Virus record (IMG/VR): IMGVR_UViG_3300044797_000098
Location: 248,001-312,000 of that record
Reading direction: 5' to 3' (one strand)
DNA length: 64,000 nt
Shown: positions 3,958 through 61,564 of the stretch, piece after piece
Layout of the letters: the number at the start of each line of letters is the position of its first letter
Position numbering within the stretch: position 1 is the first letter of the stretch
Made by a program: the position numbers and the translations under genes
The notes under the pieces: generated by a model
Databases searched by the model: none
The model's input: the letters and a program-made list of their open reading frames with translations, nothing else
Told to the model about the DNA's origin: nothing

Positions 3958-4260
3958 TTAGATTAAAATTGCAAGTTTTTCGTATTGTTCATCCGTTAGC
4001 AATAAATATCCTTGTTCAATAAGTTTCCTATCTACTTCTGCTCTGCATTCATCTAATTGATCTCTTCTATATTTAGTTTTGGACCAATTAAGTAAATTAT
4101 CACCTTTATATCTATAACACCAAGTATTTCTTTCATTTTCTGGATCAGCAATTATTATAGCGAATTGTTTATCTGTTCCAACTAAGACACGAATATCATG
4201 TGAATGAATATTATTGTAATATGATTTCCATGGTTCTAAAACTATTTTCTTTTCTCTCAT
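3958..4260 (-). CDS. YLxPW/GYILLT family protein, C-terminal tag (EKLAILI*)
   Basis: VLEPW...DRKLIEQGYLLLTDEQYEKLAILI. Confidence 0.75.
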   Translation of the reverse strand: MREKKIVLEPWKSYYNNIHSHDIRVLVGTDKQFAIIIADPENERNTWCYRYKGDNLLNWSKTKYRRDQLDECRAEVDRKLIEQGYLLLTDEQYEKLAILI

Positions 4261-4261
4261 A

Positions 4262-6034
4262 TTACGCCACCATCTTTACATTTTCAATAGCCCTACACGC
4301 CGGATTTATGCATACATTAAATTTTCCGAACTTACCTTCTCGTTCGATCATATTTTGATTGCATTTTTTACATAAAACTTTATCGCCCAACTTGTTCCTA
4401 TATGCTGTTGCTAATTCTTTGGAAAATATATCATAAAACTGTTTTAATAGTTCTGTGTGCGTTATTTTACCTTCTGCTATCTTATCTAACTCCTCTTCGA
4501 TCTTCGAAGTAAAACTATAATCCATAAATGTAAATAATTCTGATAGACAATTAGTTATTTGTTTTCCCAATTCTGTCGGTTTATATGTATTATTAGTTTT
4601 CTCAACATAATGTCTATTTGATATTTTCTTAATAATTTCTGAAAAGGTCGATGGTCTTCCGATTTGTTTTTGCTCTAATTCTTTTAGCAACGAAGCATCA
4701 TTATACCTTGGCGGAGGCTGGGTATATTTTTGATCGGCTTTTATAGATTTATCGTCCAATAATAATTCTTGTTTTTCTATTAAATTTGGTATTTCAATTT
4801 TACCGGCATCAACATCACCGAATATTTTTAGATATCCACGATCTGCTAATGCTTTACCCGATGCCTTGAAAACAATTTTGTTATCGTTTTTATTCACAAT
4901 TTTTACATTTAAGGTGTTCCATATTGCCGGTGTCATTTGACTTGCAATAGCATACTGCCATATAACTGAATATAATTCCTTCTCATCACCACTCATATAA
5001 CCGCTATCAGGTAATGCATTTATATTTGTTGGACGGATTGCCTCATGTGCTGCCTGAGCGGTCTCTTTCGTTGCGTGTATATTTTTGGTTTTAGGCAGAT
5101 CATAATTATTATCTTTGATCCATTTTCTAATATCAGTGATGGCTTCTTCTGCCATCGATGTTGCGTCTGTTCTGATGTATGTAATCACTCCATTTTCATA
5201 TAACCCTTGGGCAACACTCATACATTTCTCTGGTTCCCAACCACGCTTAGCCATAACTTGTTGTAATGATGCCGTTATCAATGGTGCTGGCGGTTTCTCT
5301 TTCACTTGTTTGGAAACAACCTTTGATACAACGAAGTGCTTATTTTCTTGTATAAAAGAAACTAATTTATCTGATTGTTCTTTATTTTTTATTTTTCCAT
5401 CATACTTGGCTGAGAATGTCTCTCGTAATTGAGTTTGCAGCTTAATACCACAAGTCCAGTATTCTTCTGGTTTAAATATCTCGATCTCGTTTTCACGGTC
5501 TGAGATTAAGCGAGTGGCTACTGATTGAACTCTACCTGCCGAAAGATTATTAGCATACGCCGTCATAAGATATGGTGAAACGGTAAATCCAACGATACGA
5601 TCGAGGACGCGTCTTGCTTCCTGAGCCCTTACCATATTAGCATCTATTGCGTGCTTTTCTTTTATTCCTTTTTCTATACCATACTTAGTTATCTCATTAA
5701 ATACTGCCCTAAAAATTGGCTTGCCTGTGGATTTTAAAATATCGGCGACATCGGCACTAATTTTTTCACCCTCTCTATCTGCGTCCGTGCATAATAGTAT
5801 TTCATTACACTCACACGAAGCATTGATTATATTATCAATTACCTCAATTTTATCTTTGAGCAAAACGTAATGAGGTCGAAAATTGTTTTCGATATCGATT
5901 CCTATGCCGTGTTTGCCACCTTTTGCGAGGTCTTTCACATGACCTACCGATGCGACAACAACATAATTGTCCCCAAGATATTCCTTGATCTTCTTTATCT
6001 TGTTAGGAGACTCGACTATTACTAATGTTTTCAT
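4262..6034 (-). CDS. topA: type IA DNA topoisomerase
   Basis: TOPRIM LVIVESP and DADREGE, SAGRVQS, active-site ITYIRTD, IGRPST, C-terminal zinc ribbon. Confidence 0.97.
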   Translation of the reverse strand: MKTLVIVESPNKIKKIKEYLGDNYVVVASVGHVKDLAKGGKHGIGIDIENNFRPHYVLLKDKIEVIDNIINASCECNEILLCTDADREGEKISADVADILKSTGKPIFRAVFNEITKYGIEKGIKEKHAIDANMVRAQEARRVLDRIVGFTVSPYLMTAYANNLSAGRVQSVATRLISDRENEIEIFKPEEYWTCGIKLQTQLRETFSAKYDGKIKNKEQSDKLVSFIQENKHFVVSKVVSKQVKEKPPAPLITASLQQVMAKRGWEPEKCMSVAQGLYENGVITYIRTDATSMAEEAITDIRKWIKDNNYDLPKTKNIHATKETAQAAHEAIRPTNINALPDSGYMSGDEKELYSVIWQYAIASQMTPAIWNTLNVKIVNKNDNKIVFKASGKALADRGYLKIFGDVDAGKIEIPNLIEKQELLLDDKSIKADQKYTQPPPRYNDASLLKELEQKQIGRPSTFSEIIKKISNRHYVEKTNNTYKPTELGKQITNCLSELFTFMDYSFTSKIEEELDKIAEGKITHTELLKQFYDIFSKELATAYRNKLGDKVLCKKCNQNMIEREGKFGKFNVCINPACRAIENVKMVA

Positions 6035-6345
6035 ATCAATAACTTAAATTTCTCACATTGTTCCTGCGTCAATAAAATATATCCACATTCAATCAACTTA
6101 CGATCCATCTTTTCTTTTAATTCTTCTATCCTATCGGGAAGATCGTAAATCCACATGGGTTCGCATTTACCGTCGATATCTTGATATTCCCATCCCCATA
6201 ATTTGGTTAAACGAGATCGTGCAATACGGGCAATCGGTATGGGAAACATACTTTTATCATTTAATAAATATCGACCAATAGAATAATTCTCTTCATTAGA
6301 CTTATGATGACTTTCTCTATATGGCTCTAAATACGATCTATTCAT
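6031..6345 (-). CDS. YLxPW/GYILLT family protein, C-terminal tag (EKFKLLI*)
   Basis: YLEPY...DRKLIECGYILLTQEQCEKFKLLI. Confidence 0.75.
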   Translation of the reverse strand: MNRSYLEPYRESHHKSNEENYSIGRYLLNDKSMFPIPIARIARSRLTKLWGWEYQDIDGKCEPMWIYDLPDRIEELKEKMDRKLIECGYILLTQEQCEKFKLLI

Positions 6346-6355
6346 AATTCCGCAT
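6342..6355 (+). promoter_or_regulatory. candidate late promoter motif (TCAT-aattcc-GCAT), 7 nt before ATG 6363
   Basis: Near-identical to the motif before 23967; see finding. Confidence 0.5.
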
Positions 6356-6362
6356 ATAATTA

Positions 6363-6761
6363 ATGATTAATCTATCTTCCTTCTTCGAAGAAAGACTTGA
6401 AAATCTTGACTGTGATCCAACGACACGAGCATACATCACCGGGATTTTCACAAAATATAAAACTGCCACTGATGACCTATCCAAGTTAGGCTCTATCACG
6501 CTAATATACGCGGAAGCAAAAAATCAGCAATCGTTTCAAAAACTAAATAATATCGCTGACTGGCTATTTTGGGCCGAGACGATGTGCCCCGAATTTTTGA
6601 ACGATGCATCAAAAGATTATTACTACACTATTGGTCAATTAAGTTATTATTCTTGCTATAAATTAACCAATAAAAAATGGATTGTATTTGAGTCTCTTGC
6701 CGATCAATTCATACCGCTTACACACGAAACCCGAAAACTGATAAAATTAAATCAACAATAA
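6363..6761 (+). CDS. hypothetical helical protein
   Basis: 132 aa; ADWLFW...DYYYTIGQLSY...VFESLADQF resembles an uncharacterised proteobacterial family (weak). Confidence 0.6.
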   Translation: MINLSSFFEERLENLDCDPTTRAYITGIFTKYKTATDDLSKLGSITLIYAEAKNQQSFQKLNNIADWLFWAETMCPEFLNDASKDYYYTIGQLSYYSCYKLTNKKWIVFESLADQFIPLTHETRKLIKLNQQ

Positions 6762-7028
6762 AAACTTATCTAACTCCTCATTCGTTATCAACGGATCTAA
6801 AACTCTATTGATCCATCTAACATCAGAATGACTGTCATTAAATACTGTTTCACCTAACCGTTCTGACGAATAAATAAAATATCCATTATAGGTATATGAA
6901 CATTCTATATACTCACCAACTGAATCTAAAAAATACCCACATTTACAACGTATTTCTACGCCACCAGAAAACGCCCTATGCAATGGTGTTGAACATCTTG
7001 GACAATTGAGAATGAATATAGTTTTCAT
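6747..7028 (-). CDS. CxxC zinc-ribbon protein, C-terminal tag (DKFLLLI*)
   Basis: CPRC...CKC; tag. Confidence 0.7.
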   Translation of the reverse strand: MKTIFILNCPRCSTPLHRAFSGGVEIRCKCGYFLDSVGEYIECSYTYNGYFIYSSERLGETVFNDSHSDVRWINRVLDPLITNEELDKFLLLI

Positions 7029-8019: not shown

Positions 8020-8021
8020 TT

Positions 8022-11089: not shown

Positions 11090-11626
11090 CTACACTAACA
11101 TTAAATACCGAAAGATTTTCTCCTTATCGTAAATATATTTATTATCAAGGGCTTCAATATGAATATTATTTATCCAGTATTCTGTTCTACCATCTGGATA
11201 TTCGATCGCAGGACCGTTCATACGATGAACCTTACCATTAATCCACCACTCTTTCACACCAATGCCATGTATGATTGCGGGTCCATTTTCATTATGATTT
11301 CTACCATTCAATACCAGATGATTCGTCTCAGTAGTTAAATTTGTTCTAAAATATATTTCACGAATTACTTTATTATTAGCATAATAGAATATTCTGTCGT
11401 AATAAAAATAAATAAAATTACTAGAATTATATTTTGGGTGATCTACGTAAGATCCTATTTTTTTATTATTTGCACATATTTTATGTGTTTTGTTATACTT
11501 CTTAAGGCGCATAAAATAACGATTTTTATTGCTCCAATACTGGCTTTTATTTTGATCTGAAAGATTCCATATTTTATTTATAAAATATGTTTTTTTTGAT
11601 GATATTTTAATTTTTCTAATTATCAT
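11090..11626 (-). CDS. HxxxGPA(I/V)EY-repeat protein, C-terminal tag (RYLMLV*)
   Basis: HNENGPAII...WWINGKVHRMNGPAIEYPDG...EYWIN. Confidence 0.75.
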   Translation of the reverse strand: MIIRKIKISSKKTYFINKIWNLSDQNKSQYWSNKNRYFMRLKKYNKTHKICANNKKIGSYVDHPKYNSSNFIYFYYDRIFYYANNKVIREIYFRTNLTTETNHLVLNGRNHNENGPAIIHGIGVKEWWINGKVHRMNGPAIEYPDGRTEYWINNIHIEALDNKYIYDKEKIFRYLMLV

Positions 11627-12399: not shown

Positions 12400-12694
12400 C
12401 TAATATATGTTTTTTTAGTTTCTGACTTAATTTTATTCTTAACGCCCTAACTGCTTTTCCCATCATCATTTTTCTCGAAACAATGCTCCATACCATCTTT
12501 GGTTTTAATTGATTTAATTGGAATGTGGCAAAATTATCAATTTTTATTTTATTGCCAGTTTTTAGTTCATTTATTAATTCATCAACGAATATATTGATTA
12601 CCGATATAATATGATATTTATGAATGTGTTTTCCTTTTAGTTTATTGATCACTAACTGGAATAATTGACGCTTTGTATAATGATTTGGTTTCAT
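12392..12694 (-). CDS. HU/IHF-like DNA-binding protein (divergent)
   Basis: VINIFVDELINELKTGNKIKIDNFATFQL...IKLSQKLKKHI. Confidence 0.65.
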   Translation of the reverse strand: MKPNHYTKRQLFQLVINKLKGKHIHKYHIISVINIFVDELINELKTGNKIKIDNFATFQLNQLKPKMVWSIVSRKMMMGKAVRALRIKLSQKLKKHILDA

Positions 12695-12897
12695 CGTAAT
12701 AACATATATTTTTCTACATCTTCAACGGATATATTATACCGTTTCATTAAATAAATGGAAGTCTCAGCACAAAAAGATTTTAAACTTCTTTTACTACTAA
12801 TTTCTTTAAGATACCACCTGTAATCATCAATAATGTATTTGATAACACGACTTCGACTATTGCCTATATAGGCATCAATAATATCATTATTATTCAT
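12691..12897 (-). CDS. hypothetical protein, C-terminal tag (EKYMLLR*)
   Basis: Tag; coupled. Confidence 0.7.
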   Translation of the reverse strand: MNNNDIIDAYIGNSRSRVIKYIIDDYRWYLKEISSKRSLKSFCAETSIYLMKRYNISVEDVEKYMLLR

Positions 12898-13163
12898 AGT
12901 AATAACATCGTTTCTTCTGTCAATAAGACATATCCAATATCGCCAAGTCTTTTATCCATAGCAGTCATTGCTTCTTTGCCTGTTTTAAACTCTCTAAGCG
13001 AACTGTCTTCCCACCCCGTATATACCTCCCAATAATCATTTCTTTTGGCAATATAATACCATCCTACATTACTACCGGATGGATCATAATATCGTCTTCT
13101 AAGCATATAATAACCGTATTTTTCCCAAGGTAAAAGATATTTACAATATAATTTATCTTTCAT
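12894..13163 (-). CDS. YLxPW/GYILLT family protein
   Basis: YLLPWEK...DKRLGDIGYVLLTEETMLLL. Confidence 0.75.
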   Translation of the reverse strand: MKDKLYCKYLLPWEKYGYYMLRRRYYDPSGSNVGWYYIAKRNDYWEVYTGWEDSSLREFKTGKEAMTAMDKRLGDIGYVLLTEETMLLL

Positions 13164-13405
13164 AACAATAACATCGTTTCTTCCGTTAACAATATGTATC
13201 CTAATTTACGAAGACAATCATCATACGCATTCATTGCTTCTTCGGCAGTTTCATACGGAATACTTTCACAAGTATCAGCGTTCCAAGCCCACCATTGATT
13301 TGCGGAATGCACCACAAAATATACACCACCGTTATGAACGCGTCGTTTATATGAATGTCGATCATTTATTACTAATTTTTCCCAAGGATACAAGTATGCT
13401 CTCAT
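13160..13405 (-). CDS. YLxPW/GYILLT family protein
   Basis: YLYPWEK...LRKLGYILLTEETMLLL. Confidence 0.75.
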   Translation of the reverse strand: MRAYLYPWEKLVINDRHSYKRRVHNGGVYFVVHSANQWWAWNADTCESIPYETAEEAMNAYDDCLRKLGYILLTEETMLLL

Positions 13406-13641
13406 AGCAACACCAATAATTTTTCTAATTGTTCTTTTGTTAGATTTGGAAACAACTCTTCTGGCTGAATATCAGTGAAAAATACCGCCGAAAAATCACC
13501 ATATCCAATACCAGTGCCCGTATTACGATCAATATACATTTTAATATAATCCTTTTTAGATATTATTCCTTCATCAATAAATAAACGATAGTATTCAAGT
13601 ATATCTTTTCTATCTGTAAGATTACTACAATGATGACACAC
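13402..13641 (-). CDS. CxxC protein, C-terminal tag (EKLLVLL*)
   Basis: CHHC start; tag. Confidence 0.7.
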   Translation of the reverse strand: MCHHCSNLTDRKDILEYYRLFIDEGIISKKDYIKMYIDRNTGTGIGYGDFSAVFFTDIQPEELFPNLTKEQLEKLLVLL

Positions 13642-14415: not shown

Positions 14416-14613
14416 TTACATTAGTAAAAGGTATTTTTTTGCTATTTCTATAAGTTTATCAATCGTCATACATTCATATTTTTTTGTAATTATTTTTCCG
14501 TCTTTAAAAGTAAACTCAATACAACTATAACCTTTATTTATCTCTGCCCAAAATCTACAATTATCGCCAATATATCCCTGATACCATTTATCGGTAGTCC
14601 ATTTCCTAATCAT
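14416..14613 (-). CDS. hypothetical protein, C-terminal tag (KKYLLLM*)
   Basis: Tag. Confidence 0.7.
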   Translation of the reverse strand: MIRKWTTDKWYQGYIGDNCRFWAEINKGYSCIEFTFKDGKIITKKYECMTIDKLIEIAKKYLLLM

Positions 14614-17336: not shown

Positions 17337-18204
17337 TTATTTCCTTAACATAATTTTTAATACATTCACGCACAAGCGTATCCGTATCACCGAATTTAAA
17401 TCCTTCATTCATTATCTTATTCATATCCAATATACAATTTGATCTTGGTGCAATAACCATCTTATCTAATGTTTCTTTGTTTATTCTTTGGTATGTGTGG
17501 TTAGGCACATATTTTCGATATTCTTCCAATAAATCCGAATGTTTAAGTGGTAATGGACTTGCTACATTATATATGCCATATAATTCCTTGTTTATCACAA
17601 AATCTATCGCATTCACTAAATCGGAAACGAATGTCATCGAATTAGGCTCATCCAAAACCTGTTTGTATTTGATCAATTTATTCAATAAGTTTCTTGGATG
17701 TTTTTTGGATGATATTGGCATACGAAGACGAAGAATTGTCGTATTCTTCATATCTTTTAGATTATTATCACACTCATACTTGGTTTGACTATAATACGAT
17801 TTAGGTGATGTTATATCTGTTTCTTTCCATCCTGTGTCAATACGAACCTTGTATGGTATGGCATCATCCCATAATAGACAATGCATCTCATCTCTGCCGT
17901 GAGGGGATTGTCCATACATGACGCATCCACTTCCGAGGTGAATGAAACGAATACCTAATTTTTCACATTCGTGCGCGAACATTGTGGGAATAACAACATT
18001 AGCAGTATGTGTTTCTTCTTTGTGGGTCTCACAAAAGTCAATGTTTGGGCTTCCTGTGCGACCAATACAATTTACTATAATATCTGGCTTATACCAAGTC
18101 AATAATTCTTTTATTTGCTTTTCATTTGGTGAGACCCGATCTAATATAGGATTATATGGTAAATGGCTTGCAATGAAACCATTTCCTAATGTATATATTT
18201 TCAT
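17329..18204 (-). CDS. NDP-4-keto-6-deoxyglucose 3,5-epimerase/4-reductase (NRS/ER-type rhamnose synthase)
   Basis: GxGxxA, GRTGSPNIDFCETHK, YSQTK, LRLRMPIS, PNSMT. Confidence 0.82.
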   Translation of the reverse strand: MKIYTLGNGFIASHLPYNPILDRVSPNEKQIKELLTWYKPDIIVNCIGRTGSPNIDFCETHKEETHTANVVIPTMFAHECEKLGIRFIHLGSGCVMYGQSPHGRDEMHCLLWDDAIPYKVRIDTGWKETDITSPKSYYSQTKYECDNNLKDMKNTTILRLRMPISSKKHPRNLLNKLIKYKQVLDEPNSMTFVSDLVNAIDFVINKELYGIYNVASPLPLKHSDLLEEYRKYVPNHTYQRINKETLDKMVIAPRSNCILDMNKIMNEGFKFGDTDTLVRECIKNYVKEING

Positions 18205-18443
18205 ATCAAAATACTCATCTTCTCTACTTGTTCTTGTGTCAATAATATATATTCGTTATCAATTAGATACTTATCAGCATATTTTTTTGCTCGCTCAATA
18301 GAATTAAATCTTTCTATTTCAGACGACAGATTACCTAACCATATAACATAGTGATATTCGTATGAGGCGATCATAACACACACATGTCCAGTTTTTACAT
18401 AATGCCGTCTGTTATCTTCATTCCAAGGCGTTAAGTAAATCAT
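18201..18443 (-). CDS. YLxPW/GYILLT family protein, C-terminal tag
   Basis: YLTPW...DKYLIDNEYILLTQEQVEKMSILI. Confidence 0.75.
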   Translation of the reverse strand: MIYLTPWNEDNRRHYVKTGHVCVMIASYEYHYVIWLGNLSSEIERFNSIERAKKYADKYLIDNEYILLTQEQVEKMSILI

Positions 18444-18709
18444 ATCAATAATTCCAATTTTTCATACTCTTTATCATCCAAAAAACAATACCCGGCGTCG
18501 GTAAGCGTGTTCTCTACGAATTGTCTTGCTTCCATACGCGTTCCATAACTAAATGGCCCATTACAAAATCTAATCATTCCAGCCGTTCCATAACGAACTC
18601 TTTCATCTTTTGGGTCATGAATTATATAAATTAATGCTTCCTTTGAACCAAGTAAAAATATACCCTCTTTTGTTTCACTGATTTTTTTCCAAGGTGAAAG
18701 ATATTTCAT
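18440..18709 (-). CDS. YLxPW/GYILLT family protein, C-terminal tag
   Basis: YLSPW...LTDAGYCFLDDKEYEKLELLI. Confidence 0.75.
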   Translation of the reverse strand: MKYLSPWKKISETKEGIFLLGSKEALIYIIHDPKDERVRYGTAGMIRFCNGPFSYGTRMEARQFVENTLTDAGYCFLDDKEYEKLELLI

Positions 18710-19257
18710 TTAAATAAAATTAGCCTCTCGAACTCATCTGTGTTATATGAGTTATTATTTATTTTCATATTCTCTTTAATTATTATATTCAATAAATAGT
18801 TTCTAATTCGTTTTAGAAAAACTTTTCGTTTCGGGCAAGCGTCTGGTATCATATTAGAATAATTTAATACTGTAATTTCTTTTACTCTTCGTGGATATGT
18901 ATTATTTGGATTTGGAAGAAAAAGAAACGCTATTGTTGCAACGGTGTTATTATACGGATACGAATGTATCCTGATACCATCTTCCATATCTTTTTTACCA
19001 ACGGAAAAACGAACATTGACTTTTGTCATCGATCCATATGTTCCGTAGCCATACCCCCACCCCCAAGCAACACGCATACAAGACATCTTATCCCATAAGT
19101 TGTCAATACATACCGTATTGTTTTTCTCTAAATGGGCATCTGGATATTTTGTTGCTAATTTTATTAGCGCGATTTTTCTTTCTTCAAGTAAGACTAATTC
19201 CGTTTTTGATGCCGTGATTTGTTTGTCGAGTTCGTTGATGATATAGTTTAGTTGCAT
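18706..19257 (-). CDS. hypothetical protein, tag variant (ERLILFK*)
   Basis: 183-aa coupled ORF. Confidence 0.65.
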   Translation of the reverse strand: MQLNYIINELDKQITASKTELVLLEERKIALIKLATKYPDAHLEKNNTVCIDNLWDKMSCMRVAWGWGYGYGTYGSMTKVNVRFSVGKKDMEDGIRIHSYPYNNTVATIAFLFLPNPNNTYPRRVKEITVLNYSNMIPDACPKRKVFLKRIRNYLLNIIIKENMKINNNSYNTDEFERLILFK

Positions 19258-19275: not shown

Positions 19276-19563
19276 TTATTCTTCATTGGCAATTTTTAAT
19301 AGTATGTCTGCATGACAAGCAAGTGGAAAACACCAGCAAGAAAGATCACGATTTTTCAATTCTTTCTTCACAGCAGCCATTAATTCTGGCTGGCTTCTAA
19401 TCCATTCTTCATATTTTACAATAGCCTCTTCTCGCGTTTCTACTTTGTATTTAGCGAGCGTTCCATCCATATGGCTATATGGATTACCGTATTTTGTGGG
19501 GCGAGCCACATATACTGCATTAACATCATACGGAACTTTTTTACAATGATATACTCTCGGCAT
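19276..19563 (-). CDS. DUF4326 family protein
   Basis: VYVARPTKYGNPY...DLSCWCFPLACHADIL. Confidence 0.88.
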   Translation of the reverse strand: MPRVYHCKKVPYDVNAVYVARPTKYGNPYSHMDGTLAKYKVETREEAIVKYEEWIRSQPELMAAVKKELKNRDLSCWCFPLACHADILLKIANEE

Positions 19564-19811
19564 TATATTAACATCACGTATTTTTCTATTTTGTTTTTGC
19601 CATAAATGCGTTTGCCGTCAAGTTGAAAGATACGTTTTCCATTGATCCAGTATTCAGTATCGGTGCCATTTTTATATTCGACGGCCGGTCCGTCCGGATT
19701 ATGTAATTCACCATATTTATTATACCATACTTTAATAGGTTTATACCAATTATTTATATCTTTAATATAAAAAGGTTTTCCTAATAATCGATTTAACCAA
19801 TTAATCATCAT
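19563..19811 (-). CDS. HxxDGPAVEY-repeat protein, C-terminal tag (EKYVMLI*)
   Basis: LHNPDGPAVEYKNG...EYWING. Confidence 0.75.
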   Translation of the reverse strand: MMINWLNRLLGKPFYIKDINNWYKPIKVWYNKYGELHNPDGPAVEYKNGTDTEYWINGKRIFQLDGKRIYGKNKIEKYVMLI

Positions 19812-20572
19812 ATTAACATCGCATATTTTTCTGCTTCGGGATATTTTTCCACGAAGGTTTTAATTTCATTATTCAATACATATGGTGCTGATATTTTCTT
19901 TATCACGGATAGCGCTTTACCAAGATTTGGGTTTCCATACGTATCCAGTATTCTATATACCGACCAATTTCCGCTGGTAAAACTGGCATTTTGCGAATAT
20001 ATAGGATTTATATGTCTTTCAATGATTGTTTCATACATAATGTCTTCTAAAAACTCTGATAGTTTTGGTCGCTCTAATCGGAAAAATAATGGAAGCGGGT
20101 AAAATATATGGTGTGTTTTCACCTTAATAAATTCAATTAACATATCTTCTTCATTGTCATCCATATTATATTTTAGAAAATCTATAAAATCCAATGCGTT
20201 TTCATTTATTATGTAAGTAAAATACCCATCAATTAGGAACGGATATTTACCCGTTATTGCTTGTTGAAAAATAACATATTTGTTTTCGATGGAAAGATTT
20301 TTATGCTGTAATAATTTATGTATGTATGATATTTTATCAGCGTATTTTGGATATTTATCTATATCTAAAAATATGTTTGCAATTTCATTTTTTGTTATGG
20401 CTTTTATTTCTAAATCAGTGATGGACTGCTTTAACATATTTATTTCTGCTTGCAATAATTGATTGTTCGTCATTAATTCTTTTAAATAATTGCATTTTAT
20501 TTGTCCATTACCTCCCGTATAGACATAAGTTGTGCAATTCCATCCGCTGCATATCGAACATTGTTCTGACAT
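19808..20572 (-). CDS. hypothetical protein, C-terminal tag (EKYAMLI*)
   Basis: N-terminal CxxCxxxxC; tag. Confidence 0.7.
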   Translation of the reverse strand: MSEQCSICSGWNCTTYVYTGGNGQIKCNYLKELMTNNQLLQAEINMLKQSITDLEIKAITKNEIANIFLDIDKYPKYADKISYIHKLLQHKNLSIENKYVIFQQAITGKYPFLIDGYFTYIINENALDFIDFLKYNMDDNEEDMLIEFIKVKTHHIFYPLPLFFRLERPKLSEFLEDIMYETIIERHINPIYSQNASFTSGNWSVYRILDTYGNPNLGKALSVIKKISAPYVLNNEIKTFVEKYPEAEKYAMLI

Positions 20573-43520: not shown

Positions 43521-43521
43521 C

Positions 43522-44401: not shown

Positions 44402-44716
44402 CTACATCAATAATAGATATTTTTCAACATCGTCAGCATATTTAATGTAATCAGGCACATGTATTTTGCATTGTTCTATGTGTTGATACGCGCGATAGGT
44501 ATTATTACCTAACCAATGTGCAATAGTAGCCGAAACATTTAATTGTCTTTCTTTACAAACATTTATGATTATCTTTACGCATTCATACACATAAGGATTA
44601 CCACTATTATTTATCATTCCAACTACTACTTCTTCTGGCTCAAAATCTGAATCATATATAGTATAGGTTGCGTGCGCATCCTTTCGACAATGTCCGAAAC
44701 GGATTTCAGTAATCAT
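44402..44716 (-). CDS. DTDF/LNVA family paralog, tag EKYLLLM*
   Basis: IYDSDF...KERQLNVSATI. Confidence 0.8.
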   Translation of the reverse strand: MITEIRFGHCRKDAHATYTIYDSDFEPEEVVVGMINNSGNPYVYECVKIIINVCKERQLNVSATIAHWLGNNTYRAYQHIEQCKIHVPDYIKYADDVEKYLLLM

Positions 44717-45739: not shown

Positions 45740-46054
45740 TTACTGTAATAATAACAATTTAAAAAATCTATCCAGTGTTTCTTTTGGGTTATCTTTATTC
45801 ATTTGAATTCTTACTGGCAATTCCCACCAAACCATAGGTAATTGTTTTTTATCAATTGGATGCGGTATTCCGTCTATCCATTTGTGCGGAACGCGTTGTG
45901 CATCGCTTAAATTATAAATAAATGTAATTTTTTTTATGTGATACTGATATATTTTACCATCAATTGCTAATGAATATTCACTGTTATAGTAATAATGTGG
46001 CGTACCATAAAAATAATCCCCGCCACTCAGTAATTTTACTTCTTTATATTTCAT
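45740..46054 (-). CDS. paralog pair member, tag FKLLLLQ*
   Basis: LAIDG...NPKETLDRFFK. Confidence 0.75.
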   Translation of the reverse strand: MKYKEVKLLSGGDYFYGTPHYYYNSEYSLAIDGKIYQYHIKKITFIYNLSDAQRVPHKWIDGIPHPIDKKQLPMVWWELPVRIQMNKDNPKETLDRFFKLLLLQ

Positions 46055-46315
46055 TTATGCTAACATTAACAATTTAAAAAATCTGTCCAATGTTTCTTTC
46101 GGATTATATTCATCCATCAAAAGAGCTGTTCGTAAATAATATGCATCTTGAAAAGACATAGGTATCCATTTTTTATATAATCGAGTTATTTTAGGAAAAC
46201 ACTCATATAGATATTCAGTCCCATCAATACTTAATTCGTAATCAGGAGATCTAATATCTCCTGTAGAATATTTTCGTATTATTTTAACGGTGTTATATTC
46301 CAACTTGCTCTTCAA
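46055..46315 (-). CDS. paralog pair member, tag FKLLMLA*
   Basis: LSIDG...NPKETLDRFFK. Confidence 0.75.
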   Translation of the reverse strand: MKSKLEYNTVKIIRKYSTGDIRSPDYELSIDGTEYLYECFPKITRLYKKWIPMSFQDAYYLRTALLMDEYNPKETLDRFFKLLMLA

Positions 46316-47102
46316 CCCGTTTCATTTTTTCACCAAAAAACTTATTCACCACTTCCGTCGCTTGATCGCTGATGTCCAATCCAGGCGCATAATTGTATTC
46401 CAAAAACCACCAGCCATCTTTTCCAACAATATAATCAATTCCACAAACATCCAATCCAAACACTTCTTTTACTTTTCTTGAATGATCTACAACCGCTTGT
46501 GGCATTTCGGGATACAATGACATCTCTGCTCCGCTACTATTTTTAATCCACGAAGTTTCGTTGTCAAAACGCAAGGTAAAATAGTCATCACCAATCCACA
46601 ACACCCTACAAGATATACCATCAAAAAACGGTTCTATCGTTGCAATACCTTCCCACCTTGGCAACTCTAATTCATTTCTAACTAAATACTTTCCCTGTCC
46701 CTGATGCTCATTGCCAGTCTTTACAACGAATGGATATTGTATTGGAATATCTTTCGTGTATTCTGATTGAATAACTGTATTAGTATTGAGCCCAGCACGA
46801 ATCACTTTTTCCATGCACGCATGCCTGTTGTCAATACTTAATAATTTTCTTGGATCGGGATAGCAAGGAATGTTATTGTCAATTAGAAAATTAAAGTTTT
46901 GTCGTCTGATTGTGTCGTCGGAAACACTTGCGTGGTATATACAACCCAATAAATGTTCGTTCATATTATGGCGATGAAAAGATTTGTCTCCGTTAAGATA
47001 TAACGTTTTTGCTGTCTGACTGTGAATCCAATTATCGTGCTGGAAAACAAGCGGTAATGTTATACGGAACTCACCTGATAGGAAAATAAATGATCGGTTC
47101 AT
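46293..47102 (-). CDS. ATP-grasp (RimK-like) ligase
   Basis: YPFVVKTG..HQGQGKYLV, EPFF, CGIDY, FLEYNYAPG. Confidence 0.8.
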   Translation of the reverse strand: MNRSFIFLSGEFRITLPLVFQHDNWIHSQTAKTLYLNGDKSFHRHNMNEHLLGCIYHASVSDDTIRRQNFNFLIDNNIPCYPDPRKLLSIDNRHACMEKVIRAGLNTNTVIQSEYTKDIPIQYPFVVKTGNEHQGQGKYLVRNELELPRWEGIATIEPFFDGISCRVLWIGDDYFTLRFDNETSWIKNSSGAEMSLYPEMPQAVVDHSRKVKEVFGLDVCGIDYIVGKDGWWFLEYNYAPGLDISDQATEVVNKFFGEKMKRVEEQVGI

Positions 47103-47395
47103 AGTAATAATAAATACTTTTCTAATTGTTCGCCATATTGATGATATTCTTCATCATATTCTTTAATGAACCGTATAGCGTCTAACATCGACATTCCTCT
47201 ACACTTGCTGTATAGCACAATGAATTTTAAAATGTTTTTTGCTATATCATCACCTTTACTCGTATAAAACTCTATTACCGATCTAATGCAACATATAAAC
47301 ATATATCCCATTTTTATACCTAATTCAACCTCTCCATAGGTATCATCAATGATGAGAATACTGTTTCTGCCTTTGTCAATAAACTTTGTTATCAT
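47099..47395 (-). CDS. divergent DTDF family member, tag EKYLLLL*
   Basis: IDDTY...DIAKNIL...YGEQLEKYLLLL. Confidence 0.7.
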   Translation of the reverse strand: MITKFIDKGRNSILIIDDTYGEVELGIKMGYMFICCIRSVIEFYTSKGDDIAKNILKFIVLYSKCRGMSMLDAIRFIKEYDEEYHQYGEQLEKYLLLL

Positions 47396-47700: not shown

Positions 47701-48021
47701 CTACCTTAATAATGTTAATTTTTCATATAAACTGAATATCTCTTCATTAGATCTATCGATTAGATTTTTATCTAATTTTATTGTATTATTCTGATCAAAA
47801 AATCCTAACCATGATGAGGCTTGTCCATTAGATATATTTATAGATATAAACATTTTTCTACCATCATAATCATAATATTTATGAACTACAATATGATTAC
47901 CGATATGACTTGTCCATCTGTGTTCTACATAATGGTCATGACAACGATATGTCGTATTGCCTGTATGATTATAATCCATAATTATATCATTACCACATAT
48001 ATGACATATTTTTTGTAGCAT
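47701..48021 (-). CDS. CxxC protein, tag EKLTLLR*
   Basis: CHIC...C..H. Confidence 0.7.
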   Translation of the reverse strand: MLQKICHICGNDIIMDYNHTGNTTYRCHDHYVEHRWTSHIGNHIVVHKYYDYDGRKMFISINISNGQASSWLGFFDQNNTIKLDKNLIDRSNEEIFSLYEKLTLLR

Positions 48022-48582: not shown

Positions 48583-48671
48583 GCCGATATCTCCTATGTC
48601 AATAGGGTAAGGTTTTCATTTTCTAATATACGAAGATACTTAATTAATTCGTGCAAACAATCTTTACTGTG

Positions 48672-48736
48672 CTTGAAAAGAGTAATCTTTTCAAGAAAAC
48701 TTGAAACATAAGAACCCCCGAACATTTATGTCGGGG
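48672..48736. other. two intergenic hairpins upstream of the IscA-like gene
   Basis: CTTGAAAAGA-gtaa-TCTTTTCAAG (10 bp perfect) and CCCCGA...TCGGGG. Confidence 0.55.
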
Positions 48737-48838: not shown

Positions 48839-49102
48839 TCATGTTAGTATATCAAAATGCTCTTTATCGCTAATACTCAATAGTTTTCTAATTAATGCCA
48901 TTAAACAATCTTTGCAAACATCACCTTTGTGGTGATGACATAAATCCATTACATCAATAATACAATTTTGGAATGATACATATTCATCGCACCAAGATAT
49001 CCATCGTTCGTTTTTGACGCCCTTTATTATACATTGCATAATCGTCTCTCCACTAAAAAATACATTCCCAATGCTTACCGCATTTTGAACACTTCCACTC
49101 AA
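48839..49102 (-). CDS. hypothetical protein
   Basis: ORF with CxxC. Confidence 0.5.
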   Translation of the reverse strand: MSGSVQNAVSIGNVFFSGETIMQCIIKGVKNERWISWCDEYVSFQNCIIDVMDLCHHHKGDVCKDCLMALIRKLLSISDKEHFDILT

Positions 49103-52250: not shown

Positions 52251-52601
52251 TCATATTAGTAATTTGTATGTATCGATATTGTTGTATAGTTTTTTCATAT
52301 CTATTGTTTCTGGCGCTGGCAGATTTTTTATTTCTTCGCCATGGCAAAATACTTTAATGTAAGATTTTGTTATACTTAAAAAGAATGGCTGTTCAAACCA
52401 ACTAAAACCAGTAGCACTATTTATATAGCAATCCCAGCCAACCCATATTTGCTTGATTCTATGCATCTCATCTATTTCAGTTAATAATTTGCAATCATAA
52501 CACGTATATTGATTTAATTCGAATACATCGTTTTCTTTTCCGCAGATACAACAATGGGTAAAATTATCTAAATCATATGTCGATGTAAAATCAATTATCA
52601 T
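52251..52601 (-). CDS. CxxC-CxxC protein, tag DTYKLLI*
   Basis: CCIC...CYDC. Confidence 0.7.
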   Translation of the reverse strand: MIIDFTSTYDLDNFTHCCICGKENDVFELNQYTCYDCKLLTEIDEMHRIKQIWVGWDCYINSATGFSWFEQPFFLSITKSYIKVFCHGEEIKNLPAPETIDMKKLYNNIDTYKLLI

Positions 52602-53699: not shown

Positions 53700-54020
53700 T
53701 TAAAGTAGTATTAGGTATTTATCTATATCCTCCTTATATTTATTAAATATAGCGCATGCTAAATGTGTATTATACGCACTTTTATATTTAAAATACTCAA
53801 TAGTATCCGGTATTGTATAACCTGTCTCTTTGTCTATTCTTAAAAATCTAATTATATTTAACGCAACATTAAGTTTTCGTTTTTCATATATTCTGACGAC
53901 TCCATCTAATATGGAGTTTGATCCACCACCATCCCCTCTGTTTTTAACGATATCAATAAAATCTGTATCTATTACTTTTATTGATTTTGTTTTGGAATTA
54001 TATTCTGCATTAATTAACAT
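53700..54020 (-). CDS. DTDF/LNVA family paralog, tag DKYLILL*
   Basis: VIDTDF...IYEKRKLNVALNI. Confidence 0.8.
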   Translation of the reverse strand: MLINAEYNSKTKSIKVIDTDFIDIVKNRGDGGGSNSILDGVVRIYEKRKLNVALNIIRFLRIDKETGYTIPDTIEYFKYKSAYNTHLACAIFNKYKEDIDKYLILL

Positions 54021-54433: not shown

Positions 54434-54435
54434 AT

Positions 54436-54609
54436 TTATTTCAATATCAGCAATTTATCCATTTTATTTACGGCTTCGACAAAATCTTTCCAACCCGATG
54501 GATCAATTATCATATCATTACAGCCATCCCAAATACCAATACTACCGTCTTCACGTAAATAAATACTACCCTCAAATCCATCAGTAAATGGTATATCTAA
54601 ATTATTCAT
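54436..54609 (-). CDS. 57-aa protein, tag DKLLILK* (not in ORF track)
   Basis: Manual translation MNNLDIPF...VNKMDKLLILK; coupled to 54606. Confidence 0.75.
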   Translation of the reverse strand: MNNLDIPFTDGFEGSIYLREDGSIGIWDGCNDMIIDPSGWKDFVEAVNKMDKLLILK

Positions 54610-54833
54610 TTCAATATCAATAACTTATTCATTCGTTGCAATGCTTCCGCCAAGTCTAACATCAGTTCGACGGGAAAATCGACTGTATTATATCCATCTC
54701 TGTCGTCATACCAAGTATCTCTTATTTTGTATTCTTCGCTAATAACGCATAAATTATTATCTATTGTAATTTTTAGCCTTCGTTCTTTTATGTTTCTTCC
54801 ATCGTTTCTGGCGAATGGGATGAATAATTCCAT
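54606..54833 (-). CDS. hypothetical protein, tag NKLLILK*
   Basis: Tag. Confidence 0.7.
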   Translation of the reverse strand: MELFIPFARNDGRNIKERRLKITIDNNLCVISEEYKIRDTWYDDRDGYNTVDFPVELMLDLAEALQRMNKLLILK

Positions 54834-57612: not shown

Positions 57613-57623
57613 AGTATTCAGTT

Positions 57624-60215: not shown

Positions 60216-60471
60216 TGTTTTTCTTCCTTGTTGTGTGTTGTTGGTTCAAAATCGTCGTTATCAAAATCCCAATGTCTGCAATCTTCATTTCCAAAAAGAA
60301 TAATTTCAACATTGAAAAACTAAAAAATATACCCGCATGATCCTTCTTTACCCTGCGTTTTAGATATAGTTCCCACATCGAAGCAAGATTACCACGCCAT
60401 TGAAACTGAAACTCAAACCATTTATTTGGTATTGGGAGCGGGCAGGAAAAGATATATGATTTATTTTTCAC
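60190..60471 (-). CDS. hypothetical protein
   Basis: Coupled ORF (KxDHAG). Confidence 0.55.
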   Translation of the reverse strand: MKNKSYIFSCPLPIPNKWFEFQFQWRGNLASMWELYLKRRVKKDHAGIFFSFSMLKLFFLEMKIADIGILITTILNQQHTTRKKNNDSSIIRF

Positions 60472-60704
60472 GCCAACACCAATAACTTGGATGCTTTTAT
60501 GATAGCATCACCAAGCGATTTCATATCCTCTATTGATATCGCTTCGACATGATCGGATGCCCAATTTCTTTCAATATGTCTTCCATCCGCTGATACCCAA
60601 TTAGCCTTACGATCAAAACTTAAGTCAATACTACCATCATCGAAAACTTTAATAACTAACTGTCTTTCTATTTCGCTTTCGATTTTGAGTTTTATTTCTT
60701 TCAC
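60468..60704 (-). CDS. hypothetical protein, tag SKLLVLA*
   Basis: Tag. Confidence 0.7.
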   Translation of the reverse strand: MKEIKLKIESEIERQLVIKVFDDGSIDLSFDRKANWVSADGRHIERNWASDHVEAISIEDMKSLGDAIIKASKLLVLA

Positions 60705-60934
60705 GCTAACACCATCAATTTTTGATATCGTTGCATATGTTCAATTAGTTCATTGAAGTTTTGACCGGTAATACTAATGCTCTCAACCTCTTGCCAATAA
60801 TTATGACCAGTTTCCATCAACTCAATACTAACCTTAATATCAATATCGTTTTCATATGGATTGAAACAAACTCTATACTTGTAATCTGAATGATCTTGTG
60901 TTAGATCAAAAATCATCTTTTTCATTGACCCCAC
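60701..60934 (-). CDS. hypothetical protein, tag QKLMVLA*
   Basis: Tag. Confidence 0.7.
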   Translation of the reverse strand: MGSMKKMIFDLTQDHSDYKYRVCFNPYENDIDIKVSIELMETGHNYWQEVESISITGQNFNELIEHMQRYQKLMVLA

Positions 60935-61377
60935 ACCAATCCTTCATTGCCCCAAAACACATAATTGCCATCATCCAACTCAATTAGATGCAACTGTTGT
61001 TTTAGATTTTCCCATTCCACTGTCAATACATATTGACCATTTTGCCAATGCGAACCGTCTTTATTATTGACAATGCAGGTTCCTAATCCAGCAAGATATT
61101 CGAGCACAATAACGGAAACTTTGTCATCGCTGAATACCGAATAACTGCAACCCTCATCACTCAACTTAACCGCTTCCTTGCTATTTGTCAAGGCAGCGAC
61201 CGAGACTTCCGAATGTATCCTACCTTCACCCACAAGTATCTGAAACTTCAATGTTTCATTTGGTCGAGATGATATTGCGAATGCTGTTGCGTCCTGAAAA
61301 TACTGTTGTCCCGTCATATCATTGAATATGAACTCGGAACGAACATAAGATAGGAACGGAGGAATGTTAATTAGCAT
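60922..61377 (-). CDS. hypothetical protein
   Basis: 151-aa ORF. Confidence 0.65.
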   Translation of the reverse strand: MLINIPPFLSYVRSEFIFNDMTGQQYFQDATAFAISSRPNETLKFQILVGEGRIHSEVSVAALTNSKEAVKLSDEGCSYSVFSDDKVSVIVLEYLAGLGTCIVNNKDGSHWQNGQYVLTVEWENLKQQLHLIELDDGNYVFWGNEGLVWGQ

Positions 61378-61378
61378 A

Positions 61379-61564
61379 TTAAAATAACAACTGATATTTA
61401 TCCCATTGTTCTTGTGTTAAGAGAATGTATTCAGAAAAAATAAGCGTGTTATCCATATGATTTTTAATCTCTACTAAATAGGAAGAATTTAAGTAATATT
61501 CCGTAGTAAAATACGCTCTTTTTATACGGCAAGGTTCTAAAAATACATACGGTAAGTTTTTCAA
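61379..61564 (-). CDS. short YLxPW/GYILLT family member, tag DKYQLLF*
   Basis: FLEPC...EYILLTQEQWDK. Confidence 0.7.
   Translation of the reverse strand: MKNLPYVFLEPCRIKRAYFTTEYYLNSSYLVEIKNHMDNTLIFSEYILLTQEQWDKYQLLF

Follow-up and report, generated by a model that had tools for sequence, protein, structure and literature searches.

C-terminal tagged genes in the analysed region

The window analysed here is a stretch of 64,000 nucleotides (positions 248,001 to 312,000) of the IMG/VR contig 3300044797_000098, which represents a 406-kb uncultured phage. The region mixes genes for sugar modification, RNA repair, chaperones and replication with numerous small ORFs, and the genome also encodes S21, peptide deformylase and trigger factor. 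Of the 118 minus-strand genes of the window, 36 were found to end in the pattern hydrophobic-x-hydrophobic-[L/F]-x-stop, and 28 of these also have K/R at position -6. The typical form is [E/D]-K-[Y/L]-x-hydrophobic-L-x-stop. The genes carrying this tag (carriers), together with two genes that carry a variant four residues shorter, are as follows:

3958..4260 (-), carrier, family A (YLxPW), ends EKLAILI
6031..6345 (-), carrier, family A, ends EKFKLLI
6747..7028 (-), carrier, CxxC protein, ends DKFLLLI
11090..11626 (-), carrier, MORN-like GPAIEY repeats, ends FRYLMLV
12691..12897 (-), carrier, singleton, ends EKYMLLR
12894..13163 (-), family A, short tag variant TEETMLLL (four residues missing)
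13160..13405 (-), family A, short tag variant TEETMLLL
13402..13641 (-), carrier, singleton, ends EKLLVLL
14416..14613 (-), carrier, singleton, ends KKYLLLM
18201..18443 (-), carrier, family A, ends EKMSILI; tag corresponds to helix 70-79 in the AlphaFold model
18440..18709 (-), carrier, family A, ends EKLELLI
18706..19257 (-), carrier, 183 aa, ends ERLILFK (the one Phe at -2)
19563..19811 (-), carrier, MORN-like, ends EKYVMLI
19808..20572 (-), carrier, 254 aa, ends EKYAMLI; homologues down to 49% identity keep the tag
32481..32717 (-), carrier, ends NKYRILV
33718..34167 (-), weak carrier, ends NTILVLS
35445..35849 (-), carrier, CxxC protein, ends EKYILLK
37833..38531 (-), weak carrier, 232 aa, ends QMMVVLF
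39312..39515 (-), carrier, ends EPLILLK
39755..40135 (-), carrier, ends EHLLVLV (missed by the greedy gene caller)
40966..41385 (-), carrier, CxxC protein, ends DKAVLLK
41382..41705 (-), carrier, family B (DTDF/LNVA), ends EKYLLLI; tag corresponds to the end of helix 91-106 in the AlphaFold model
41715..42005 (-), carrier, family B, ends AKYLMLV
44117..44392 (-), carrier, family B, ends DKYLMLI
44402..44716 (-), carrier, family B, ends EKYLLLM; body 46-55% identical to orthologues, last 7 residues 100%
45740..46054 (-), carrier, NPKETLDRFF pair, ends FKLLLLQ
46055..46315 (-), carrier, NPKETLDRFF pair, ends FKLLMLA
47099..47395 (-), carrier, family B, ends EKYLLLL
47701..48021 (-), carrier, CxxC protein, ends EKLTLLR
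48594..48725 (-), weak carrier, 43 aa, ends ENLTLLT
48839..49102 (-), weak carrier, ends EHFDILT
52251..52601 (-), carrier, CxxC protein, ends DTYKLLI
53700..54020 (-), carrier, family B, ends DKYLILL
54436..54609 (-), carrier, 57 aa, ends DKLLILK
54606..54833 (-), carrier, ends NKLLILK
60468..60704 (-), carrier, ends SKLLVLA
60701..60934 (-), carrier, ends QKLMVLA
61379..61564 (-), carrier, family A, ends DKYQLLF

The shared C-terminus had been described in a first-pass annotation based on the sequence alone, and this observation was confirmed. All 20 examples given there were recovered at their positions with their C-termini, and our counts of Leu at -2 in 35 of 36 carriers (one Phe) and of K/R at -6 in 29 of 36 (27 K, 2 R) are identical to those of the annotation. 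However, the carriers comprise 43-254 aa rather than 57-254 aa, and they fall into considerably more than the "at least six" families claimed.

Enrichment, anchoring and selective constraint

Within the window the strict pattern [EDNQSK]K[YLFMA]x[LIVM]Lx occurs 24 times at the C-terminus against 3 times in 17,265 internal positions (binomial P ~6e-67). The loose pattern occurs 34 times against 1.55 expected in the initial set of 110 minus-strand genes (36 of 118 in the corrected gene set used elsewhere). As an external null we examined 91 unrelated viral loci, in which 2 of 1,059 genes (0.19%) show the pattern with K/R, and 1 of 678 genes (0.15%) in those loci with a GC content of 29-39%, compared to 28 of 118 (24%) in the window. 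Since the control loci were selected because each of them holds the DNA pattern once, this null is, if anything, inflated. Furthermore, the core [EDNQ]K[YLFM]x[LIVM]L is followed by exactly one residue in 21 of its 23 occurrences, never by 0, 2 or 3 residues, and is internal in the remaining two.

The synonymous divergence in the last 10 codons equals that of the gene bodies (dS 0.60 vs 0.63), while omega is lower (0.20 vs 0.27; 0.28 at the ends of untagged genes), so selection acts on the protein. Orthologues with 26-55% identity in the body keep 86-100% of the last seven residues. The K and E codons in the tag match the background usage, whereas Leu is encoded by TTA, TTG and CTA with a mild excess of TTG (chi-square P 0.001). 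All three stop codons are used.

The tag was not detected in any gene with a Pfam hit (0 of 33 against 36 of 85 of the other genes, Fisher P 8e-7), and it is also absent from the replication/repair block next to the window. The carriers are slightly acidic (median pI 6.1 vs 7.7, P 0.012). The first-pass annotation had further pointed out that no gene preceded by an AAT-N6-GCAT motif carries the tag. This argument fails, since the motif itself is at chance level in the window (29 matches against 26.9 +/- 5.6 expected).

Relationship and predicted structure of the carriers

A phmmer comparison of sequences lacking the last 12 residues placed the carriers of the window into about 30 clusters. They include CxxC proteins, MORN-like repeat proteins and peptides of 43-51 aa, and some occur in tandem paralogue arrays. 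No cluster contains members without the tag, and a modular gain or loss of the tag was thus not seen. The family-weighted information is confined to positions -10 to -1, and a profile comparison (hhalign) of the two largest families, A and B, aligned only the last 11 columns.

The secondary structure layouts predicted by AlphaFold differ between the two families, with three strands followed by five helices in family B and four to five strands and two helices in family A. Both models place the tag in a confident C-terminal helix (pLDDT 82-89) that is continuous with the fold, and no flexible linker precedes it. On an ideal helix the hydrophobic moment points to positions -1, -4, -5, -8 and -12 (272 degrees), whereas the cross-family conservation moment points about 130 degrees away, to -2, -6, -9 and -3 (142 degrees). 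The most conserved residues, including a charged Lys and Glu, are therefore not located on the face expected to pack on the protein's own domain.

Distribution in the phage genome and its relatives

In about 104 kb of the phage genome 62 of 214 ORFs are tagged, representing 41 phmmer clusters, which corresponds to about 30% of its small, unannotated proteins from some 40 families without detectable relationship beyond the tag. Syntenic relatives share the system. The tag is the native, universally conserved C-terminus of family B, which is widespread in metagenomes (752 clusters at 50% identity) and always ends this way. In more distant phages (loci L113, L115 and L119), however, family B is the only tagged family, and only the phage clade studied here has the tag on dozens of other families. 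Compared to one relative (L004), one of four mosaic breakpoints falls at a tag while three do not.

A syntenic, tag-rich relative (L118) encodes a ClpP pair in this gene block. No ClpP was found in the genome of the window itself by two scans, which only detect close relatives.

Possible role of the C-terminal tag

The first-pass annotation had proposed that one receptor handles a whole class of early phage proteins, with a MoxR AAA+/VWA pair and an FtsK-like ATPase as candidate readers. This interpretation is only partly supported. The analysis supports the existence of the tag, protein-level selection, its presence on many families with no detectable relationship beyond it, its absence from recognisable enzymes and its anchoring to the free C-terminus, as would be expected of a recognition signal. 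In contrast, a single receptor and an early expression of the carriers remain assumptions, and no evidence points to the MoxR-like AAA+/DUF2201 pair or the FtsK-like ATPase as readers. The AAA+ protein reaches the Pfam family AAA only at an E-value of 6e-4, below the curated cut-off, and has no relative in the PDB.

We tentatively interpret the tag as a portable C-terminal amphipathic helix of about ten residues, [E/D](-10) x hydrophobic(-8) [E/D](-7) K(-6) [Y/L/F](-5) x hydrophobic(-3) L(-2) x(-1) followed by the free carboxylate, that serves as a common docking handle (rough probability 0.45). One partner, as yet unidentified, would bind the face formed by L(-2), the hydrophobic residue at -3, K(-6) and E(-7), and would sense the chain end one residue after the Leu. 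Our preferred candidate is an AAA+ unfoldase/protease of the Clp type, either host-encoded or phage-encoded, for which the tag would act as a degron for timed turnover or as a tether, as the C-terminal ClpX-binding region of SspB does (PMC7226468). The ClpP pair in L118 and the trigger factor gene of the phage are in line with this assumption, since tig is commonly adjacent to clpP-clpX in bacteria and trigger factor cooperates with ClpXP (PMC7804408). However, the last residue is charged or polar in 12 of 36 carriers and none of them ends in AA, which does not fit ssrA-type or simple nonpolar degrons.

Taking into account that the predicted helix is continuous with the fold in both modelled families, its hydrophobic residues may be buried in cis, and an integral structural or oligomerisation helix without a separate reader remains a serious rival, although we consider it less likely. 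In this scenario all carriers would descend from a family B-like ancestor by duplication and extreme divergence, or would have acquired its 3' end, and the helix would pack on the protein's own domain or zip carriers into homo- or hetero-oligomers. The presence of the tag in every member of every carrier cluster, the tandem paralogue arrays, the i, i+4 spacing of E(-10) and K(-6) as in a self-stabilising helix and the restriction to family B in more distant phages, where the tag could simply be that family's own structural end, are consistent with this view. Moreover, RssB is a published case in which a supposed C-terminal docking motif proved to be integral to the fold (PMC7226468). On the other hand, there is no profile similarity beyond the last 11 columns, the predicted layouts and types of carriers differ, the strict one-residue anchoring is maintained while all other similarity has been lost, the conservation moment lies off the hydrophobic face, and ten residues are short for a stable coiled coil.

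An involvement in virion packaging or ejection, by binding to the inside of the procapsid, a scaffold or the portal so that a cocktail of small proteins is injected with the DNA, seems unlikely. Phages do load internal proteins by terminal signals, as discussed for capsid targeting in P1 (PMC9024508), and injected anti-defence proteins might resemble the small, numerous and slightly acidic ORFans observed here, but the carriers lie in long unidirectional blocks with metabolic, RNA-repair and replication genes rather than with structural genes, and the tag is predicted to be part of a folded helix. It is even less likely that the C-terminus acts as a nascent peptide in the ribosome exit tunnel, modulating termination or promoting re-initiation on the next gene. 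Although the motif is fixed relative to the stop codon, the phage encodes ribosome-associated factors, and many carriers overlap the next start codon as ATGA, tagged and untagged genes do not differ in their coupling to the downstream gene (17 of 36 against 43 of 81 overlap it). In addition, some tagged genes are the last in their operon, such as the gene ending at 53700 which is followed by a hairpin and a T run, and the use of all three stop codons also speaks against this possibility. A signal at the DNA or RNA level (promoter, RNA element or recombination site) or a by-product of the AT-rich composition is disfavoured. The mild excess of TTG codons and the one breakpoint at a tag are opposed by the unaltered dS, the background usage of K and E codons, the position of the motif always in frame and directly before a stop, its rarity in AT-matched viral controls and the three breakpoints elsewhere.

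Comparison with known C-terminal signals

Nonpolar C-terminal tails act as degrons for Tsp, FtsH and ClpXP, and the ssrA tag is recognised by ClpXP, ClpAP and FtsH. The phage tag shares with these degrons the position at the extreme C-terminus, the hydrophobic penultimate region, the importance of the position relative to the free carboxylate and the potential service of many unrelated substrates by one reader. However, it is genetically encoded rather than added by tmRNA, lacks an LAA or AA ending (0 of 36), has a variable last residue and a conserved upstream E-K pair, and is predicted to be helical and folded instead of forming an unstructured tail. The ClpX-binding region of SspB, which docks to the ClpX zinc-binding domain, is likewise a conserved C-terminal peptide with Leu, Lys and small hydrophobic residues that tethers a variable protein to one AAA+ machine, with LKxh as the reported consensus for binding (PMC7226468). 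In contrast to the dozens of tagged families, only one or two adaptor proteins per cell carry this region, which in SspB follows a flexible linker, and no sequence register matches exactly. An interaction of the tag with ClpX would be inferred by analogy only.

Hub-docking motifs such as the beta-clamp-binding motif (QL[SD]LF / QLxLxL) and the SSB C-terminal tail are also short, often C-terminal and Leu-rich, and shared by unrelated proteins that bind one hub. None of the carriers has Gln at -6 or -5, and clamp motifs bind in extended form while the tag is predicted to be helical. No clamp gene was identified, as the 401-aa ORF next to the phage DnaE has no significant Pfam hit to any family, so no clamp domain was detected. 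Among the cargo signals by which one terminal peptide directs many different proteins into one shell, the T4 capsid-targeting sequence is N-terminal and cleaved, whereas the cargo-loading peptides of encapsulins, whose shells share the HK97 capsid fold, are C-terminal, Gly/Ser-rich, extended and linker-borne. A third example is the loading of Dar proteins in P1, and no genomic link to structural genes was seen for the phage tag. The poxvirus ankyrin/PRANC (F-box-like) multigene families also combine a constant C-terminal module with many variable proteins of a large virus, but PRANC is a domain on one repeat family that binds host SCF, while the element described here is a ten-residue motif on unrelated folds in a bacterial virus. 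The eukaryotic signals PTS1 and KDEL represent proteome-wide C-terminal sorting codes. The resemblance to the eukaryotic acidic di-leucine pattern [DE]xxxL[LI], which 24 of 36 carriers fit, is taken as coincidental.

In summary, our analysis establishes the motif, its C-terminal anchoring, the protein-level selection, the restriction to ORFan families, the helical prediction and the distribution in the clade, whereas the function of the tag, its action in trans, the existence of one partner and the identity of this partner are inferred. If the proposed reading is correct, the tag would tie some 40 unrelated small accessory proteins of this huge-phage clade to the same machine.

Genomic context of the tagged genes

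The window has a GC content of 34% and is almost entirely coded on the minus strand. It belongs to contig IMGVR_UViG_3300044797_000098 (JGI Ga0480565_0000007; 406,470 bp), where it occupies about positions 248,001-312,000, and to which megablast and tblastn searches of the GenBank phage collection revealed no match. No tRNA genes and no Rfam hits were detected in the window, and scans of genome contigs with the S21 protein and the DegT aminotransferase, which were aimed at the host, found no relative.

The Pfam hits on record for the called genes indicate a huge-phage accessory region. They comprise HNH, MT-A70, ribosomal protein S21, topoisomerase IA, an FtsK-like ATPase, DUF192, a DksA-type zinc finger and HU, OMP decarboxylase, RmlD, a SET domain and Thg1, a DegT/PglD/glycosyltransferase cluster, two RNA ligases and PNKP, HSP20, FGE-sulfatase, an IscA-like protein and YpsA, as well as a DUF2201 metallopeptidase/VWA protein, a weak AAA+ protein and a TnpB on the plus strand. 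Genes for a peptide deformylase with a SEC-C motif, a primase, an SbcCD-like pair, trigger factor and a DnaE-type polymerase lie just outside the window. The features referred to below are the following (window coordinates unless stated otherwise; L120 is a locus including genes just outside the window).

3528-3911 and 38733-39167, with L120 1055-1570 and 10480-11721: ribosomal protein S21, an HSP20 small heat-shock protein ending in IEIK (an IxI-like motif), a peptide deformylase fused to a SEC-C motif, and a trigger factor, together a set of translation and nascent-chain factors
8216-9229: FtsK-like protein with the alpha and motor domains of a DNA translocase
9661-11049: 462-aa protein
11090-11626: MORN-like tagged gene
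12894-13405: family-A genes with a shortened tag
19808-20572: 254-aa carrier
20579-21064: SET-domain (protein lysine methyltransferase-like) gene, conserved in relative L118 (JGI 3300037316)
22825-23967: 380-aa Thr/Pro/Ala-rich protein
34801-35448, 42573-43583, 44716-45729 and 22037-22804: an RNA-repair set scattered among the tagged ORFs, consisting of two RNA ligases, a polynucleotide kinase-phosphatase and a Thg1-like enzyme
55254-57368: DUF2201 protein
57624-58781 (plus strand): TnpB (OrfB_IS605 plus Cas12f1-like TNB)
59082-60215: AAA+ protein

The TnpB gene is located on the opposite strand inside the unidirectional block, between the DUF2201 gene and the DUF433/AAA+ genes, and is likely an IS insertion. 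Copies of TnpB were also found in the relatives L117 (ENA ERZ27254251, 136 kb) and L118.

Occurrence and anchoring of the C-terminal motif

The observation of the first-pass annotation, a shared C-terminal peptide on otherwise unrelated small proteins, was confirmed, and every example listed there was found at its coordinate. In our curated gene set 36 of 118 minus-strand genes end in hydrophobic-x-[LIVMF]-[LF]-x-stop, with Leu at -2 in 35 of them (one Phe) and K/R at -6 in 29, in agreement with the earlier counts. Carriers are shorter than the other genes (median 94.5 versus 142.5 aa) and slightly more acidic.

Chance or AT bias as the origin of the motif was rejected on the basis of two comparisons. 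The strict pattern occurs 24 times at the C-terminus and 3 times in 17,265 internal positions (P ~6e-67). Furthermore, a scan of IMG/VR with a degenerate DNA pattern for the tag returned 98 loci, of which the 91 from other contigs served as a composition-matched and, if anything, upward-biased null. In these loci 2 of 1,059 genes show the K/R pattern, compared to 28 of 118 in the window. The core [EDNQ]K[YLFM]x[LIVM]L is followed by exactly one residue 21 times and never by 0, 2 or 3 residues. Tag-like stretches were detected internally in the 380-aa protein encoded at 22825-23967, which consists of two long internal repeats containing INRYLLLLSG and VNGYLQMLTQ, respectively, and has no significant family match.

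Two family-A genes in the window carry a variant that is one helical turn shorter (TEETMLLL). In total, five family-A members (window 12894-13405 and locus L011 7100-7900) carry a tag exactly four residues shorter, LLTEE(T/Q)xLL(L/I) instead of LLTxEQxEKxxLLI, in which the LL-x end is kept while the E-K-Y/L segment is lost.

Level of selection

The K and E codons of the tag follow background usage, and Leu uses three codons with a mild excess of TTG. We compared orthologues in two relatives, L003 (IMG/VR 3300035696_000016) and L004 (ENA ERZ27245405). The last ten codons of carriers have a dS of 0.60 and an omega of 0.20, compared to 0.63 and 0.27 for the rest of the carrier genes and 0.63 and 0.28 for the last ten codons of non-carriers. 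Orthologue pairs whose bodies are only 26-55% identical keep 86-100% of the last seven residues. The constraint is therefore on the peptide and not on the DNA or RNA; an element acting at the nucleic acid level is further contradicted by the invariable in-frame position directly before a stop.

The tag is not linked to translational coupling, since 17 of 36 tagged genes overlap the next gene compared to 43 of 81 untagged genes, and the distance to the downstream gene does not differ. It is not a recombination hotspot either. In the window segment 43930-46560 two blocks of about 100% nucleotide identity to L004, a contig from a different sample, are flanked by sequence of 60-80% identity, and the junctions fall inside genes, which indicates recent recombination between co-circulating relatives. 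However, only one of four mosaic junctions with L004 falls at a tag.

The AAT-N6-GCAT motif, which the first-pass annotation had invoked as a marker separating untagged genes from the carriers, occurs at chance level. TGATATA is not enriched overall (31 matches versus 27 expected), but 22 of the 31 copies are on the coding strand. Several of them are located in short intergenic gaps 10-25 nt upstream of start codons (e.g. 3518, 14895, 16133, 19267, 22813, 25104 and 33138, minus strand), so that it may be an extended -10-like promoter element.

Extent of the shared element

Family-weighted information is confined to positions -10 to -1. It amounts to 3.3 bits for L(-2), 2.1 bits for Y/L(-5), 2.0 bits for K(-6), 2.0 bits for the hydrophobic residue at -3, 1.7 bits for E/D(-7) and about 1.2 bits each for E/D(-10) and the polar residue at -9. 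The last residue is the least conserved position of the tag (0.70 bits), and beyond about -10 to -13 the information drops to the baseline.

A homologous C-terminal domain common to all carriers, which had been named beforehand as an observation that would speak against the earlier interpretation, was not detected. With the last 12 residues removed, phmmer places the carriers in about 30 clusters in the window plus relatives, none of which mixes carriers with non-carriers, and in 41 clusters in the 104 kb of this genome examined. Hhalign of the two largest families (A, YLxPW; B, DTDF/LNVA) aligns the last 11 columns only, although these were the only two families compared at profile and structure level.

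The tag is not tied to any enzyme, since 0 of 33 Pfam-annotated genes carry it (Fisher P 8e-7). Scans of all 36 carriers against Pfam and PHROGs gave no convincing match: no family is matched by more than one member and the best E-value is about 1e-3.

Predicted structure

AlphaFold2 was run on paralogue and orthologue alignments of both families. The model of family B (mean pLDDT 86, pTM 0.79) consists of three strands followed by five helices, and the tag forms the last part of helix 91-106. The model of family A (mean pLDDT 84, pTM 0.71) consists of four to five strands, a helix at 49-62 and a short strand, and the tag forms helix 70-79. The pLDDT of the tag is 82-89 in both models. Foldseek revealed no relative at E <= 0.001 in PDB for either model, nor in BFVD for the family-B model; an insignificant match to SOCS2 (E 0.7) was disregarded.

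On an ideal helix the hydrophobic moment points to -1, -4, -5, -8 and -12, while the cross-family conservation moment points about 130 degrees away, to L(-2), K(-6), -9 and -3. This comparison is an inference from ideal geometry and does not reveal whether these residues are buried.

Distribution within the genome and among relatives

The tags continue elsewhere in the same genome. The contig region 312-322 kb contains more family-A and family-B genes, including short variants, the region 327-337 kb contains nine tagged genes, and the region 363-374 kb contains eleven, including seven tandem paralogues ending in ERHYKLLILQ. The replication/repair block at 238-248 kb contains none, whereas one of the small ORFs just beyond it, downstream of trigger factor at about 235.6-235.9 kb (L120 12924-13268), ends in KDKYIILV. 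In the about 104 kb examined, 62 of 214 ORFs are tagged.

Syntenic relatives share the system, namely L003, the loci L004-L009, IMG/VR 3300031595_000166, L117 and L118, where the variants include DIEKLMALQ and FDKLKVLA. Very small tagged ORFs of 44-53 aa at loci L037 (2185-2319) and L091 (5161-5474) consist of little more than a short N-terminal segment followed by FT(S/V)EQLEKYLLLI.

A search of 1.84 billion representatives with a profile of family B found 752 proteins at E <= 1e-3 and 227 at E <= 1e-10, nearly all of which end in [EQDN]KYLxL[ILMV] exactly at the C-terminus. In three more distant phage contigs (L113, L115 and L119; GC 39-47%) only the family-B genes are tagged and their neighbours are not. 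The tag is therefore the ancestral end of one widespread family, and its spread over dozens of families is specific to this clade. Homologues of family A and of the 254-aa carrier were found by a word-indexed search in only a few metagenome and related contigs, and all the sequences examined are tagged.

Comparison with known C-terminal signals

In contrast to ssrA-type degrons (ClpXP/SspB), which end in LAA or AA and are added co-translationally by tmRNA, 0 of 36 carriers end in AA (the last residue is I, K, V, L, A, R, M, F, T, S or Q), the tag is encoded in each gene, and ARAGORN found no tmRNA in the window. Degrons of the nonpolar C-terminal tail type (Tsp, FtsH) have nonpolar residues in the last three to five positions, with a small and uncharged last residue, and an accessible tail. 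In the carriers, positions -5 to -2 are nonpolar in nearly all cases, while the last residue is charged or polar in 12 of 36 and the tail is predicted as a confident helix. To the C-terminal Leu/Lys/small-hydrophobic motif by which an SspB-like tether (XBR) binds the zinc-binding N-domain of ClpX (consensus LKxh, PMC7226468), the tag shows a resemblance only.

The tag does not correspond to the beta-clamp-binding motif (QL[SD]LF / QLxLxL), as no Gln was found at -6 or -5 in any of the 36 carriers and position -6 is K in 27 and R in 2. Moreover, the 401-aa ORF next to the phage DnaE has no significant Pfam hit to any family, so no clamp domain was detected. PDZ class II ligands require a hydrophobic residue at the very last position and at -2 from it, whereas in the carriers the last residue is polar or charged in a third of cases and the conserved Leu is the penultimate residue. 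Encapsulin or capsid cargo-loading peptides are Gly/Ser-rich, extended, preceded by a flexible linker and encoded next to a shell gene. The tag is predicted to be helical, is charged and Leu-rich and lacks a linker, and no shell gene was found in the 104 kb examined.

Full-text literature searches found no description of a shared C-terminal motif across unrelated phage protein families. While C-terminal short linear signals serving as a common handle are known in general, the motif itself, its scale (about 30% of the ORFs in the regions examined) and its setting in a huge-phage clade have not been described.

Putative function of the tag

We tentatively propose, with somewhat less than an even chance of being correct (about 0.45), that the tag is a trans-acting docking helix read by one common partner. 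This is suggested by the exact anchoring to the free C-terminus, the conservation of charged residues and of an off-face Leu across unrelated architectures, the survival of the tag after all other similarity has been lost, and the restriction to accessory ORFans. A Clp-type AAA+ protease is our preferred partner, for which the tag would act as degron or tether, since C-terminal hydrophobic signals and the C-terminal ClpX-binding region of SspB are established handles for that machinery (PMC7226468). Furthermore, the tag-rich relative L118 encodes two tandem ClpP proteins in this very gene block (L118 11374-12545), between the DksA-like gene and the FtsK block, where the window has the MORN-like tagged gene 11090-11626. 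The first copy has Gly and Asn in place of the catalytic Ser and His (ClpR-like), while the second copy keeps both. The phage also encodes trigger factor, which cooperates with ClpXP and is commonly encoded next to it in bacteria (PMC7804408). Scans for ClpP in IMG/VR and in the window's genome found nothing, but as they detect only close relatives this is uninformative. Thus, while the motif, its anchoring, the selection on the peptide and its distribution result directly from the sequence analysis, its action in trans, the single partner, the identity of this partner and any binding to ClpX are inferred from these patterns and by analogy.

The main rival explanation, which we consider less likely but serious, is that the helix is an integral structural or oligomerisation element inherited from, or copied from, family B. 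It is favoured by the confident AlphaFold helices, the absence of tag-less family members and the precedent of RssB. A role in packaging seems unlikely, an effect of the nascent chain still more so, and explanations at the nucleic acid level are the least probable.

The interpretation given in the first-pass annotation, a single receptor with the MoxR AAA+/VWA pair and the FtsK-like ATPase as candidate readers, is only partly supported. The DUF2201 protein and the adjacent AAA+ protein (Walker A GSGKS, Pfam AAA E 6e-4, no PDB relative) show no feature linking them to the recognition of C-terminal peptides, and the FtsK-like protein has the domains of a DNA translocase. The three are neither supported nor excluded. 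The 462-aa protein at 9661-11049 was rejected as an unfoldase due to the lack of a Walker A motif and of any Pfam or PDB hit.

A more far-reaching possibility, which appears doubtful but is not excluded by the evidence, is that a clade of huge phages runs its own proteome-scale C-terminal address code, in which the ten-residue helix is read by a single phage- or host-encoded machine that sorts, tethers or destroys dozens of unrelated accessory proteins. This would be a bacterial-virus counterpart of PTS1/KDEL-type signals, or of viral adaptor families that hijack a degradation machine. In one variant of this view the variable N-terminal domains would bind host targets and the tag would deliver these targets to a protease.

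Huge phages carry hundreds of ORFans with no route to a function. A shared handle on about 30% of them would provide, through its reader, one experimental entry point for a whole class of proteins, as well as a simple sequence rule for classifying such ORFans in metagenomes. If the handle is a degron or a tether, it would show that phages organise their accessory proteome through one host or phage machine, and it could supply a compact portable tag for biotechnology. If it is instead a structural helix, it would be a striking case of a ten-residue element outliving all other sequence similarity across dozens of families.
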